DNA of 63,797 nt, the filler included, from Octopus bimaculoides (taxonomy: Eukaryota): assembly GCF_001194135.2 (NCBI RefSeq). It is 7 parts of 7 records of this genome, joined end to end, with 100 filler letters (N's around TTAATTAATTAA, not from the genome) between each part and the next. Parts side by side here need not be neighbours in the genome. Positions count along the whole stretch, not along the records: positions 42,114 to 48,181 come from NC_069005.1; 6 more parts are not named here. One strand, given 5' to 3'. The position numbers and the translations under genes were made by a program. A model generated the notes under the pieces. That model had not been told where the DNA came from. It did not search any database and saw nothing but the letters and a program-made list of their open reading frames with translations. Shown here in pieces: positions 42,472 through 47,761 of this stretch. Position 1 is the stretch's first letter; every line of letters begins with the position of its first letter.

Positions 42472-42629
42472 AAGTCACAGACAAATGCCTTCAATACAGT
42501 AAGGATTTGGACTGCAGGTTCTATGATTGTTTAAACGAAAGGTTTCCCTGTGGTGAAAGCTCGCGAAAGGGTAAAGCGCGTGCTCATTGTGTGAAATCCA
42601 AAGAAAGAGCACATAAATTGACTGATGTG
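42472..42629 (+). CDS. STC: Stanniocalcin-family gene, internal coding exon A (phase 1 start, phase 0 end)
   Basis: Acceptor ttttctcttttctccatttttcAG and donor GTaggt. Encodes (E)VTDKCLQYSKDLDCRFYDCLNERFPCGESSRKGKARAHCVKSKERAHKLTDV, with 5 Cys spaced as STC Cys1-5. Confidence 0.85.
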
Positions 42630-42774
42630 GTAGGTCAAACTTCTGATTAGAAACGCGCGTGAGAAATAGTAAGAGACAGAAGAGTGAGGGAGGGAGAGAG
42701 AGAGAGGGGGAGCACATGGAGAGACAGTTAAGAGGAAGGAGGATGTCGTTTTATTATCATTATTATATCGTAAG

Positions 42775-43975
42775 GTGGTGAGCTGGCCGAAACGTTAGCA
42801 CGCCTGATGAAATGCTTAGCGGTATTTCGACTGCCGTTACGTTCTGAGTTCAAATTCAGCCGGGGTCGACTTTGCCTTTTATCCCTTCGGGGTCGATAAA
42901 TTAAGTACCAGTTACGCACTGGAGTCGATGTAATCGACTTAATCCCTCTGTCTGTCCTTGTTTGTCCCCTCTATGTTTAGCCCCTTGTGGGCAATAAAGA
43001 AATAAGGAACGTTAGCACACCGAGCGAAATGCTTAGAGGTATTTCGTCTGCCGTTACGTTCTGAGTTCAAATTCCACCGAGGTCGATTTTGCCTTTCAGC
43101 CTTTCGGGGCCGATTAAATAAGTACCAGTTACGCATTTGGGTCGATATAATCGACTTAGTCCGTTTGTCTCTCCTTGTTTGTCCCCTCTGTGTGAAGCCC
43201 CTTGTGGGCAGTAAAGAAATAAGAAACTTTAGCATGCTGGACGAAATGCTTAGCGGTATTTCGTCTGTCTTTACGTTCTGAGTTCAAATTCCGCTTAGGT
43301 CNNNNNNNNNNNNNNNNNNNNNNNNNNNNNNNNNNNNNNNNNNNNNNNNNNNNNNNNNNNNNNNNNNNNNNNNNNNNNNNNNNNNNNNNNNNNNNNNNNN
43401 NNNNNNNNNNNNNNNGGGTCGACTTTGCCTTTTATCCCTTCGGGGTCGATAAATTAAGTACCAGTTACGCACTGGGGTCGATGTAATCGACTTAATCCCT
43501 CTGTCTGTCCTTGTTTGTCCCCTCTATGTTTAGCCCCTTGTGGGCAATAAAGAAATAAGGAACGTTAGCACACCGAGCGAAATGCTTAGAGGTATTTCGT
43601 CTGCCGTTACGTTCTGAGTTCAAATTCCACCGAGGTCGATTTTGCCTTTCAGCCTTTCGGGGCCGATTAAATAAGTACCAGTTACGCATTTGGGTCGATA
43701 TAATCGACTTAGTCCGTTTGTCTCTCCTTGTTTGTCCCCTCTGTGTGAAGCCCCTTGTGGGCAGTAAAGAAATAAGAAACTTTAGCATGCTGGACGAAAT
43801 GCTTAGCGGTATTTCGTCTGTCTTTACGTTCTGAGTTCAAATTCCGCTTAGGTCGACTTTGCTTTCATCCTTTCGGGGTCGATACATTAAGTACCAGAGA
43901 AACACTGGGGTCGATGTAATCGTTTAGTCCCCTACCCCAAAATTTCAGACTTTGTGCCTATTGTAGAAGGGATTA
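42775..43975 (+). repeat. Head-to-tail tandem array of ~216-nt SINE-derived units
   Basis: Units start at 42789, 43007, 43223, 43560 and 43776. Each has the SINE head/core plus a ccctctgtctgtccttgtttgtcccc..aagaaataa linker. There is a 114-N gap inside. Confidence 0.85.
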
Positions 43976-44264
43976 TTATTATTATTATTATTATTATTAT
44001 TATTATTATTATTATTATTATTATTATTATTATTATTATTATTTTATGTTTGACTTTTGCTTTGCATTTGTACAAGTTGGATCCAAGTCTCACCCAGAGA
44101 CTTCAAGAGACAACAAGTTAGAAGTTCATGTAGGTGTTATGGCTAGGGTCATATATTTCGATTTGTACATATTATTATTATTATTATTATTATTATTATT
44201 ATTATTATTATTATTATTATTATTATTATTATTATTATTATTATTATCATTATTATTATTCATA

Positions 44265-44832
44265 TACACTCAACAGATTAGGCTGTTGGAAAAGAAAAGA
44301 ATCCTAACATCGGGCTACAACAAGTAGCCTTAGATGCCAAGAACCCTCCTAAGTATCCTAGCTGTCCCTAATAACAGTGTTTTCTGCAGCTGTATTAAAC
44401 TTGGTTTTATGTCTATTTCCTCTAACCATTAGTTCAGATCTTTAGGGATAGTTCCCAATGCACCTATAACTACTGGGATTCGATTTACCCGCACTTTCCA
44501 TAGATTCTGCTATTCATTAGCTAGGTTGTGATACTTTGTTAATTTTTCTATACCTCTCATATTGATTTTATCATCATTTGGGACTGTAAAGTCAATTATC
44601 TGGCACTTTCTATTCTCTTTATCTACTACTACCAAATCAAGCCTTCTATCTTCTATTACTCTGTCAGTCTAAATATCAAAGTCCCACAGCATCTTGTATG
44701 TCTTACTTTCTTGTACTTTACTTGGTTCATGTTCATACCATTTATCAGTATGTTCAAATCCTAGCTTTCTACATAGCTTCCACTGGATTGCTCTTCTTAG
44801 AATGTCATGTCTTCTCTTGTATTCTTTCCTTA
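44265..44832 (-). mobile_element. 5'-truncated R4/Dong-clade element embedded in (TAA)n
   Basis: RKEYKRRHDILRRAIQWKLCRKLGFEHTDKWYEHEPSKVQESKTYKMLWDFDI*TDRVIEDRRLDLVVVDKENRKCQIIDFTVP. (ATT)n tracts abut both ends. Confidence 0.85.
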
Positions 44833-45377
44833 TTATTATTATTATTATTATTATTATTATTATTATTATTATTATTATTATTATTATTATTATTATTATT
44901 ATTATTATTATTATTATTATTATTATTATNNNNNNNNNNNNNNNNNNNNNNNNNNNNNNNNNNNNNNNNNNNNNNNNNNNNNNNNNNNNNNNNNNNNNNN
45001 NNNNNNNNNNNNNNNNNNNNNNNNNNNNNNNNGAGCTATTGGAATCGTTTGCACCCCGGGCAAAATACCTAGCGGCATTTCGTCCGTCTGTACATTCTGA
45101 ACACAAATAGAAAAAAAAAATTTTTTTTTGTTTGTTTTATGCAATAAATATTTAACTCTACTTCAGTTTTCTAATTTTTCATACATTAAGTATGTTGACA
45201 GCCAAATTATCTTTTATTTAACAAGTCGATGGCAACCCTAACCATGCAGGACACGGTCATCACTCTGGGAGGTACTTTCAAAATACCTACATTACCTTCT
45301 TTGTTATGGTACATTTCACTGCTACCATACACCGATCTTTTCTTGTTACTTAGTTTTATAAATTATTTGTAACTCAG

Positions 45378-45563
45378 GCATCTAGAAAGTTGCCCTCCGA
45401 AGCACAAGTCTGGGTAGGATTGGTTATGGAAAATCAGTAGTCATCTATGCATACCAGCCTCCCCTCTCCATGCCACGGGCGTTATGCAAAGGAAAAGCCG
45501 ATACAGCTTGGCACCACTGAGTTCACAGCTCATTTCTACAGCTGAGTGAACTGGAGCAACGTG
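45378..45563 (-). mobile_element. Partial SINE, inverted relative to 45624-45960
   Basis: Reverse complement of ~45733-45925. Confidence 0.8.
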
Positions 45564-45623
45564 TCTCTCTGTTTTTCCTTTCATTTCTTCACTATTTTTT
45601 AAATATCTATACATTATCCTACG

Positions 45624-45960: not shown

Positions 45961-46216
45961 TTACCCTTCTTTCTCCTACGCGCCATTCTTAACTTGTTAT
46001 TTATTTCTTCATCCGCGAAATTAGAGAGATCAATTACTGGGGTCTTTGTTATCTACTTGGCCTCCATTCCTCTCAAAATTGCTTGTCTTGTGTTATAACT
46101 AGACATAATTATTATTCACTCCCGCCCAAATAAATAAATAAATAAATAAATAAATAAATAAACAATCCCTAAAACGTTAATTTTTGTTTTCACTAACCGC
46201 TGTCTAATATTCACAG

Positions 46217-46443
46217 GGTAAGATCTGGATTAATAATGTCATAAAATGTTTCGTGAAAGAGTTAACAGATATCTACAAAAGTCCGTCACTCGATTGTAAA
46301 TCGGCCAACACAATTGTCATGGGCATACAACAAAAATGTTACACATCCAATGATTTCTGTAATGTTGGCTGGACTCACCGCCAGGAACTGTGGAATATAT
46401 TCAAAGAACCCATAGCCTCGTCCAAATCACATTACTATAAAAT
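46217..46443 (+). CDS. STC: Stanniocalcin-family gene, exon B (phase 0 start, phase 2 end)
   Basis: Acceptor ctaatattcacAG and donor GTaagt. Encodes GKIWINNVIKCFVKELTDIYKSPSLDCKSANTIVMGIQQKCYTSNDFCNVGWTHRQELWNIFKEPIASSKSHYYK(M). Aligns by eye with recalled STC1 segments GKAFVKESLKC, VQEECYSKLNVC and NRYYNRL. Confidence 0.9.
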
Positions 46444-46649
46444 GTAAGTATTTGTTATTTTTGTTGTTGTTGGTGGTGGTGATAGTAATAGAGGAGGTGG
46501 TGGTGGTAGTCGTGATGATGGTTGCACTGATCGAGTGAGGGACATCTTGGTGTTGTGGAGGGATTTGTAATTATTGGTGGAGACTCAGTTCAATTTTGAT
46601 CGAAAATTCAGATGGTCGGGTTTCGTTCCGGATATTAGGATATGATATA

Positions 46650-46885
46650 GGTGTGGCTGTATAGGAAGAATCTTGCTTCCAAATCACTTGGTTCCGGGTT
46701 CAGTCCTACTGCGTGGCACCTTGGGCAAGTGTTTTCTACTACAACCTCGAGCCGACCAAATCCTTGAGTGGATTTGGTAGTCAGAAACTGAACGAAGACC
46801 GTCGTTCGTATGTGTGTTTGTATGTGTGTGTGCGAATGTGTGTGTATCTGTGTGTGTGTTTCCCTTGTCTGTGTTTACACCCCAC
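46650..46885 (+). mobile_element. CORE-like tRNA SINE, 5' part
   Basis: Matches the 40600 copy (ggttccgggttcagtcc..ggcaccttgggcaagtg). Confidence 0.75.
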
Positions 46886-46989
46886 AACGCACAACAGCCA
46901 CTTAGAAATATTGCACGCTCTTCTGTAGGTGACTAAAGCCATGTCAATGTAGGGAATCCCTTTCGTATATTCAGCGAGTATCTGAGTGT

Positions 46990-47480
46990 CACAAGTATCT
47001 CGCTTCTTATCTCTACGCTCTGCCGGAGTTGGGCAGTGGGGACTGATTTATCTTTTGATTGTTGAAAGTTTCCATCAGTGATCTCTTATTAGCCACAACC
47101 ATATTGAGCAGATTTCATCTGCCATGTCTATCTTCTTGGTGACTTTCTTTATTTCTTTGGATTCCAAACCAATTTCCTGCAACTAAAGTACACACAGATC
47201 TTGCTAGAAAATCGCCGCAGCCAACAGCAAAAGGGCACGAGGCCACGTGTAATCCCCTTACAAGAGCCTCATCAAATCAGTCCTGAAATGTGGCTTCTTT
47301 CTTCTGATAGGAAGACGAGTCCACCATTCAAATCCACCTGATTCTCGTAGTCTGAGATTTGATGTAAAATAGAAAGCAGTTTTCCTACAGTTGCTTTCGC
47401 TTTTGTTTGCTTCTGGAATTGATATTTTCCCATCACCTGCAGAGTTGAATTTGCCTCCTGATTCAAACTGAGTTAGCACT
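46990..47480 (-). mobile_element. Degenerate HERO/NeSL-like non-LTR 3' end
   Basis: Frameshifted remnants GLVFLSEE, RKKPHF, CPFAVGCGDFLARS and LQEIGLESKEIRKVTKKI..EICSIWLWLIRD, resembling the C-terminus of RLE-type LINEs. Confidence 0.45.
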
Positions 47481-47649
47481 AGACAATAAGAACAAACTCT
47501 GTTACTCTGTGTGTGTGTGTGTGTCTATCAGTTAGTCTGTATGATGTCTGCCTATCTGAGTGTGTTTGTTTGAGTTTTATTGACTGAGTGTGTTTGTCCG
47601 AGTATGTGTGGTTGATTAAGACACCAATATATTTTTTTTTATATTGCAG

Positions 47650-47761
47650 GATGTGGAAAAATCTTGGCAACATCTCTTCAAAATGCAATACGGCAACTGC
47701 TGAACAGTTACTAGCATGGATCAATACCCACGTCACTGATAAAAGAAAGAATTTACATTAA
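47650..47761 (+). CDS. STC: Stanniocalcin-family gene, terminal coding exon C
   Basis: Acceptor ttttttttttatattgcAG, phase-compatible (AT|G). Encodes MWKNLGNISSKCNTATAEQLLAWINTHVTDKRKNLH* and supplies the 10th Cys. Confidence 0.8.

Follow-up and report, generated by a model that had tools for sequence, protein, structure and literature searches.

What is encoded at positions 42472-47761 of this stretch of Octopus bimaculoides DNA, and is the trait for which it was singled out, a missing cysteine near the C-terminus of its product, a distinguishing one? The window, which here means the whole stretch of 63,797 nucleotides (nt), filler included, holds the gene in question on the part at 42,114-48,181, taken from NC_069005.1 and called the piece below. 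A preliminary description of this DNA proposed a hidden gene of the stanniocalcin (STC) family, predicted to lack the dimerising cysteine and to encode a secreted, probably monomeric cephalopod STC. Membership of the stanniocalcin family is secure. The three exons on the piece are best read as exons 2-4 of LOC106876189, which comes third in a row of three neighbouring STC-like genes, and the product is most likely, with confidence a little better than even, an exported protein of the salivary or venom gland. In short, the earlier reading is a correct account of a real and known gene that is ordinary in its highlighted feature.

The spliced join of the three exons gives 164 full codons followed by TAA, and the encoded peptide is found unchanged as residues 54-217 of XP_014780115.1, the uncharacterized protein LOC106876189 of O. 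bimaculoides. Residues 4-152 of the peptide match the Pfam family Stanniocalcin (PF03298) at 41.8 bits (E=9.9e-11; gathering cutoff 23), and the full XP_014780115.1 scores 42 bits on the same model. A search of the PDB with the single sequence returned STC2 only, at E ~3e-4, and a search with a profile of 19 homologues returned STC2 at E=2.5e-16, with all ten Cys aligned, Cys10 included. These ten Cys, by which Roch and Sherwood 2011 define the family (PMC5654410), are invariant columns of the 19-sequence alignment. The AlphaFold2 model of the peptide is all-alpha (predicted local distance difference test, pLDDT, 83.4; predicted template-modelling score, pTM, 0.77). Foldseek comparison of that model with the PDB gave STC2 for all of the top four matches, at probability 1.00 and template-modelling (TM) scores of 0.46-0.61, and every match to another protein had a probability of 0.16 or less; the predicted fold is the helical bundle of the stanniocalcins. 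Both the Pfam search and the structure prediction had been proposed in the preliminary description, and both bear out its family assignment.

The features of the gene are listed here by position in the window.

42472-42629, + strand: exon 2 of the gene, the first within the piece (158 nt), with an AG acceptor and a GTAGGT donor
42630-46216, + strand: intron, holding both assembly gaps, 217-nt repeats that look like short interspersed nuclear elements (SINEs), (ATT)n runs and an inverted-repeat element
46217-46443, + strand: exon 3 (227 nt), with a CAG acceptor and a GTAAGT donor; 100% match to XP_014780115.1
46444-47649, + strand: intron 3 (1206 nt), with a dispersed repeat at ~46648-46861
47650-47761, + strand: coding part of the terminal exon (112 nt), with a TTGCAG acceptor and TAA at 47759-47761
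47837-47842, + strand: AATAAA, read from the sequence as a possible polyadenylation signal, 76 nt past the stop

A polypyrimidine tract and AG lie directly before each of the three exons, and the phases are compatible, with a codon split as AT and G between exon 3 and the terminal exon. The first 2 nt of exon 2 belong to a split codon, and the exon encodes (E)VTDKC...KLTDV, which holds Cys1-Cys5; counterparts of equal size (158 nt) and phase are present in the related loci L001, L002 and L004. Exon 3 encodes GKIWINN...SHYYKM, with Cys6-Cys9, and the terminal exon encodes MWKNLGNISSKCNTATAEQLLAWINTHVTDKRKNLH up to the stop, with Cys10 and an NIS sequon. The Cys of the spliced peptide are found at residues 5, 14, 19, 26, 39, 63, 79, 93, 100 and 140. 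The window protein is predicted to be basic (isoelectric point ~9.2), ~19 kDa in mass and all-helical. The exon structure described earlier, with three exons, canonical splice signals, compatible phases and ten Cys, is confirmed by the identity of the 164 codons with the database protein. The AATAAA sits on the edge of an (AAT)n run, and it is a weak candidate for a polyadenylation signal.

Since the first exon of the piece starts in mid-codon, a further upstream exon is required; the first exon, which would carry the signal peptide, was not found within the piece. The gene is not hidden in the earlier RefSeq annotation, which had already predicted XP_014780115.1 from these three exons and this stop, but it is effectively hidden in the current one, where a chimeric protein, XP_052832787.1, takes its place.

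The eleventh cysteine

The stop lies 24 residues beyond Cys10 and there is no Cys in that tail, just as the preliminary description had read it. The window protein therefore does not have the 11th Cys that follows Cys10 in vertebrate STC1 and STC2. The description took this for a distinguishing trait, which it is not. No Cys follows Cys10 in 18/19 of the aligned homologues, and an 11th Cys has been reported only in vertebrates, in STCa and STCc of amphioxus, in nematodes and in a sponge (PMC5654410). Therefore its absence is the ordinary state of an invertebrate STC. The exception among the homologues is the O. vulgaris protein P0008 (CAI9734732.1, encoded on a different chromosome), whose tail ends KTLKCF. 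No other octopod paralogue was seen to carry an 11th Cys, and P0008 could be a family member that dimerises covalently.

Nor does it follow from the absent Cys alone that the protein is monomeric, as had been proposed. The dimer interface of STC2 is made by three helices and not by a disulfide alone (PMC9579167), and the missing 11th Cys is therefore no proof of a monomer.

A downstream exon or read-through that adds a Cys was considered and rejected for the window gene, given that four other loci keep the stop at this position. The CAT TAA at the stop and the acceptor of the terminal exon are conserved in L001, L002 and L004, and the +1 frame past the stop of the window gene holds no Cys, so that the reading of a chain that ends without a further Cys stands. 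The O. sinensis protein P0175 (XP_036369325.1) runs past the conserved ...LH stop into NVPSYWGSPETV...TKCFAFK and gains a C-terminal Cys. By comparison with 47761-47830 of the window and with L001, L002 and L004, the extension reads the conserved 3' untranslated region in the +1 frame, and it is likely a frameshift or an artefact of the model.

The segment between Cys3 and Cys4 reads CLNERFPC and lacks the vertebrate N-glycosylation sequon, in agreement with the preliminary description. The different sequon that it noted, NIS, is present at residue 135 and is the sole sequon of the spliced peptide, but it is not conserved in the paralogues. The glycosylation site is likewise non-conserved among invertebrate STCs (PMC5654410).

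A tandem octopod cluster and its possible function

In L008, a 66-kb locus, positions 50213-56280 match the piece with 100% identity. They correspond to ~11,283,761-11,289,828 of CM046625.1 (GCA_001194135.2), where the piece is flanked by gaps of 2908 N directly upstream and of 2483 N on the other side. Loci L005-L007, which hold other O. bimaculoides paralogues, were tried as the window locus and none of them matches. L008 holds three tandem STC-like copies: A, which is LOC106876188; B, which is equivalent to UniProt A0A0L8GL32; and C, the window gene. For both A and B, the terminal exon lies in an assembly gap (L008 15048-15762 and 34972-35900). The current RefSeq protein XP_052832787.1 (LOC106876188, 333 residues, 21 Cys) is a chimera of the three adjacent genes that spans L008 10001-55860 and is made up of exons 2-3 of A, a linker, exons 2-3 of B and the terminal exon of C. 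Of the window gene exons, those at 42472-42629 and 46217-46443 are left out of this protein, and the terminal exon at 47650-47761 is common to it and XP_014780115.1.

Relatives are numerous, with 176 found at E<=1e-3 in an exhaustive profile search, and the nearest are all octopod proteins labelled 'uncharacterized'. One chromosome of O. sinensis / O. vulgaris carries LOC118767942, LOC118767948, LOC118767949, LOC118767950 and LOC115224535, with one more gene on another chromosome, and CM046625.1 of O. bimaculoides carries LOC106876188, LOC106876189, LOC106876190, LOC128250786, LOC128250800 and LOC128250809, plus copy B. By sequence, the window gene is one member of a tandem family whose expansion is specific to octopods and which counts at least seven gene ids on this chromosome. 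A neighbour-joining tree places the octopod copies in one clade (78% bootstrap), sister to the canonical-type cephalopod STC, and groups the window with L004, L002 and LOC118767948 at 82%. The earlier wording, which made of this protein the cephalopod STC, is thus too broad for what is one of three adjacent copies within such a clade.

The paralogues of O. vulgaris / O. sinensis have four exons, of which exon 1 encodes a signal peptide of ~36 residues and the others match those of the window; the proteins begin MLKLFSIILLQWALTSQG... (signal peptide MLKLF...SQG). Splicing of L001-L004 with the GTAAGT donor and TTGCAG acceptor gives intact open reading frames with ten Cys in 4/4, which end 18-30 residues past Cys10 with no further Cys. 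An in-frame TAA overlaps with the exon-3 donor, and for this reason the annotated models P0001, P0003 and P0004 stop falsely at ...YYKM; the C-terminus of P0005 is also wrong. Expression or venom studies that use the fused XP_052832787.1 and models with false ...YYKM ends will miscount the family.

A canonical-type STC of Argonauta hians, GAB1608148.1 (P0013), and a divergent STC-like protein, GAB1608149.1 (P0032), which is among the nearest relatives of the window gene, have consecutive accessions and are encoded on one 18.3-Mb contig. This adjacency suggests that the divergent family arose by tandem duplication beside the canonical gene, and the octopod tandem family would then derive from the canonical cephalopod stanniocalcin. 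A word-based search with P0013 returned P0013 alone, and a canonical STC in Octopus proper was not directly shown.

The rate of evolution was estimated by pairwise ratios of nonsynonymous to synonymous change (dN/dS) after Nei-Gojobori. Between the window gene and its nearest O. vulgaris and O. sinensis relatives dN/dS is 1.88, 1.13 and 1.02, and among those three relatives it is 1.15-1.39. The introns of close copies are ~80-91% identical, and the proteins of close copies appear, on these comparisons, to change about as quickly as neutral sequence. The ten Cys and ~55 positions are invariant among close octopus copies, a pattern that would fit diversifying selection on a stable scaffold.

The salivary or venom-gland role is favoured because of the copy number, the fast evolution of the protein and a recent report of venom-gland mimics. 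A 2026 preprint describes stanniocalcin mimics in octopus venom glands, O. bimaculoides included, and names the cephalopod venom superfamily SF5 'stanniocalcin doppelganger toxins' (bioRxiv 10.64898/2026.02.02.703354). It is the sole paper found in the literature search that ties stanniocalcin to cephalopods. The window protein would be secreted by means of a signal peptide from an upstream exon outside the piece, as judged from the paralogues, and exported from the salivary or venom gland, where it may imitate the stanniocalcin of prey. A more specific form of this proposal, to be held only tentatively, is that the octopod STC-like cluster is a venom-recruited family under diversifying selection, the members of which would be monomeric, basic mimics of prey STC that act non-covalently on a prey target, possibly a pappalysin or an STC receptor. 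If this is true, then the cluster is a natural probe for the STC signalling partner.

Several observations weigh against export as a salivary or venom protein. The dN/dS is significantly above 1 in one pair only (Fisher p=0.025, uncorrected), relaxed constraint could also account for the high values, and among the three O. bimaculoides copies dN/dS is 0.54-0.90, as calculated for exons 2-3 only. Protein searches returned no transcript-derived protein identical to the window protein. The first exon of XP_014780115.1 (MADATAATVLL...) maps 9.1 kb upstream and is not homologous to the signal-peptide exon of the family, and an exon of the family type was not found anywhere in the gap-rich 66 kb of L008.

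The lower dN/dS among the O. bimaculoides copies indicates some purifying selection, and it is among the points that speak for an endogenous role, in which the protein would be a hormone or paracrine STC that controls octopus ion balance or a pappalysin-type protease, with the duplicates split among tissues. The STC fold and ten-Cys framework are in keeping with such a role, as are the ancient and widespread occurrence of STC homologues in invertebrates (PMC5654410) and of pappalysins with a conserved LNR3 module across metazoans (PMC11925022). On the other hand, the window protein is without the traits of the canonical type, that is, the hydrophobic stretch between Cys4 and Cys5 and the long C-terminal tail of P0013 and P0170; there are many tandem copies, with dN/dS between species of ~1 or higher; and an interaction of invertebrate STC with invertebrate PAPP-A has been judged unlikely (PMC11925022). 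The endogenous role is therefore possible but doubtful, and the calcium/phosphate or insulin-like growth factor (IGF)-axis role proposed in the preliminary description may be kept as a candidate.

The absent signal-peptide exon also bears on a further alternative, that the gene is a decaying or non-functional recent duplicate, redundant and neutrally drifting, perhaps without a first exon or promoter of its own. Values of dN/dS near 1 in several comparisons, the lack of a separate gene in the current RefSeq pipeline and the lack of an identical transcript-derived protein in the databases are all consistent with decay. For the absent exon, though, the simplest explanation is the gap of 2908 N just upstream, together with the other gaps. 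Decay is hard to reconcile with three open exons and splice sites that are all canonical, with the invariance of the ten Cys and ~55 further positions, or with the conserved stop, and it is improbable. The tandem expansion, the fast evolution and the divergence from the canonical type agree with the report of venom-gland mimics, and together they place the exported salivary or venom role somewhat above the endogenous hormone role, with the dead duplicate lowest in what is a provisional ranking.

The main value of the locus is the correction of its annotation and a pointer to a fast-evolving cluster of octopod STC-like genes. With its copy number and high dN/dS, the cluster is a reasonable choice for work on the binding partners of invertebrate proteins with the STC fold. 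As a discovery it carries little weight, given that the protein is public, the invertebrate family was described in 2011 and the venom-gland mimics of octopus were reported in 2026.

Assembly gaps and repeats in the introns

Two assembly gaps, at 43302-43415 and 44930-45032, both lie inside the intron at 42630-46216, and the chromosome-level assembly carries the identical two gaps. A coding exon concealed in them was considered and rejected. Full-length homologues are continuous over the junction KLTDV/GKIWIN, with no extra or absent residues, and therefore no coding sequence has been lost to the gaps, which are located in repeats. Gap 1 is placed within an array of 217-nt repeat units, and its flanks (42863-43301 and 43416-43854) are the same sequence, identical at 438/439 positions with an offset of 553. 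Rather than lost unique sequence, it probably marks a place where overlapping contigs were left unmerged or where a repeat array was collapsed. Gap 2 is placed within an (ATT)n run.

The 217-nt unit is in tandem at 42789-43292 and 43417-43931, with ~2.3 copies flanking gap 1 on either side, and dispersed copies with 85-94% identity are found in every locus of L001-L004. The unit looks like a SINE-like element, and ARAGORN found no tRNA in it. The same intron holds an inverted repeat with arms at 45378-45563 and 45733-45925, each ~190 nt and ~84% complementary, copies of which are found in the matching introns of paralogues and elsewhere. The whole at 45378-45925 is probably a foldback element or one resembling a miniature inverted-repeat transposable element (MITE). 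The repeat at 46648-46861, in the second intron, has many copies on both strands across L001-L004, with 72-87% identity.

Microsatellites of (ATT)n are found at 43972-44047, 44170-44260 and 44830-44929, and of (AAT)n at 47837-47948; positions 48042-48181 are also of low complexity. These four long trinucleotide microsatellites, the last of them oppositely oriented, account for the many 'inverted repeats' reported by a repeat finder. Scans of the piece for tRNA and Rfam families gave no tRNA and only sub-threshold Rfam matches in low-complexity sequence; those to microRNA families at 48042-48181 are not credible, given that the sequence there is (CATA)n/(TA)n. A Pfam search with an open reading frame fragment from the minus strand at ~44500-44830 gave no match, a result without weight since part of the query was a guessed linker.

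Comparison with known stanniocalcins

The closest known counterparts of the window gene are LOC118767948 and LOC118767949 of O. sinensis / O. vulgaris (P0002, P0004 and P0005; L001, L002 and L004), which share its four-exon structure, splice motifs, ten Cys and stop. Nucleotide identity with these copies is ~80-82%, introns included, yet amino-acid identity is 59-65%. The NIS sequon is absent from them, and two have a tail that is six residues longer than that of the window protein.

In common with the invertebrate STCs described previously (PMC5654410) and with P0013, the window protein has ten Cys, no 11th Cys and non-conserved glycosylation sites; full-length invertebrate members have a signal peptide. 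It differs from the canonical type between Cys4 and Cys5, where it has the basic GESSRKGKARAH rather than the hydrophobic six-residue stretch of canonical invertebrate STCs (within GYAHNIGMFY in P0013). P0013, P0014 and the non-cephalopod homologues carry G(Y/F)a...(Y)C in this place. The tail past Cys10 is 24 residues long in the window protein and 42 in the canonical-type STC. As a separate observation, the Branchiostoma lanceolatum proteins P0010, P0011 and P0012 combine two tandem STC domains with Cys-rich, phospholipase-A2-like and goose-type-lysozyme-like regions, and one member of this amphioxus cluster is named 'LYG2, partial'; such proteins may be truly multidomain or the result of fused gene models.

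The SF5 toxins come from the same species and are, as is predicted for the window protein, secreted STC-like products with predicted folds similar to that of STC2. Human STC2, an inhibitor of PAPP-A (PDB 8a7e, 8a7d, 7y5q and 8hgh), shares the helical fold of the modelled protein, with a TM score of up to 0.61 over 157 columns, and the same register of ten Cys, at an identity of 17-22%. In vertebrate STCs these ten Cys form five intrachain disulfides. The dimer disulfide of the STC2 Cys211 type is absent from the window protein, the chain of which ends short of that position. Cys120 of STC2 makes the covalent link to PAPP-A. The aligned position is occupied by Ser in the window protein and by no Cys in the family profile, and invertebrate STCs are without a residue of this type (PMC11925022). 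Therefore only non-covalent binding of the kind seen with STC1 is conceivable, and the window protein, if it acts at all, would act in that way.

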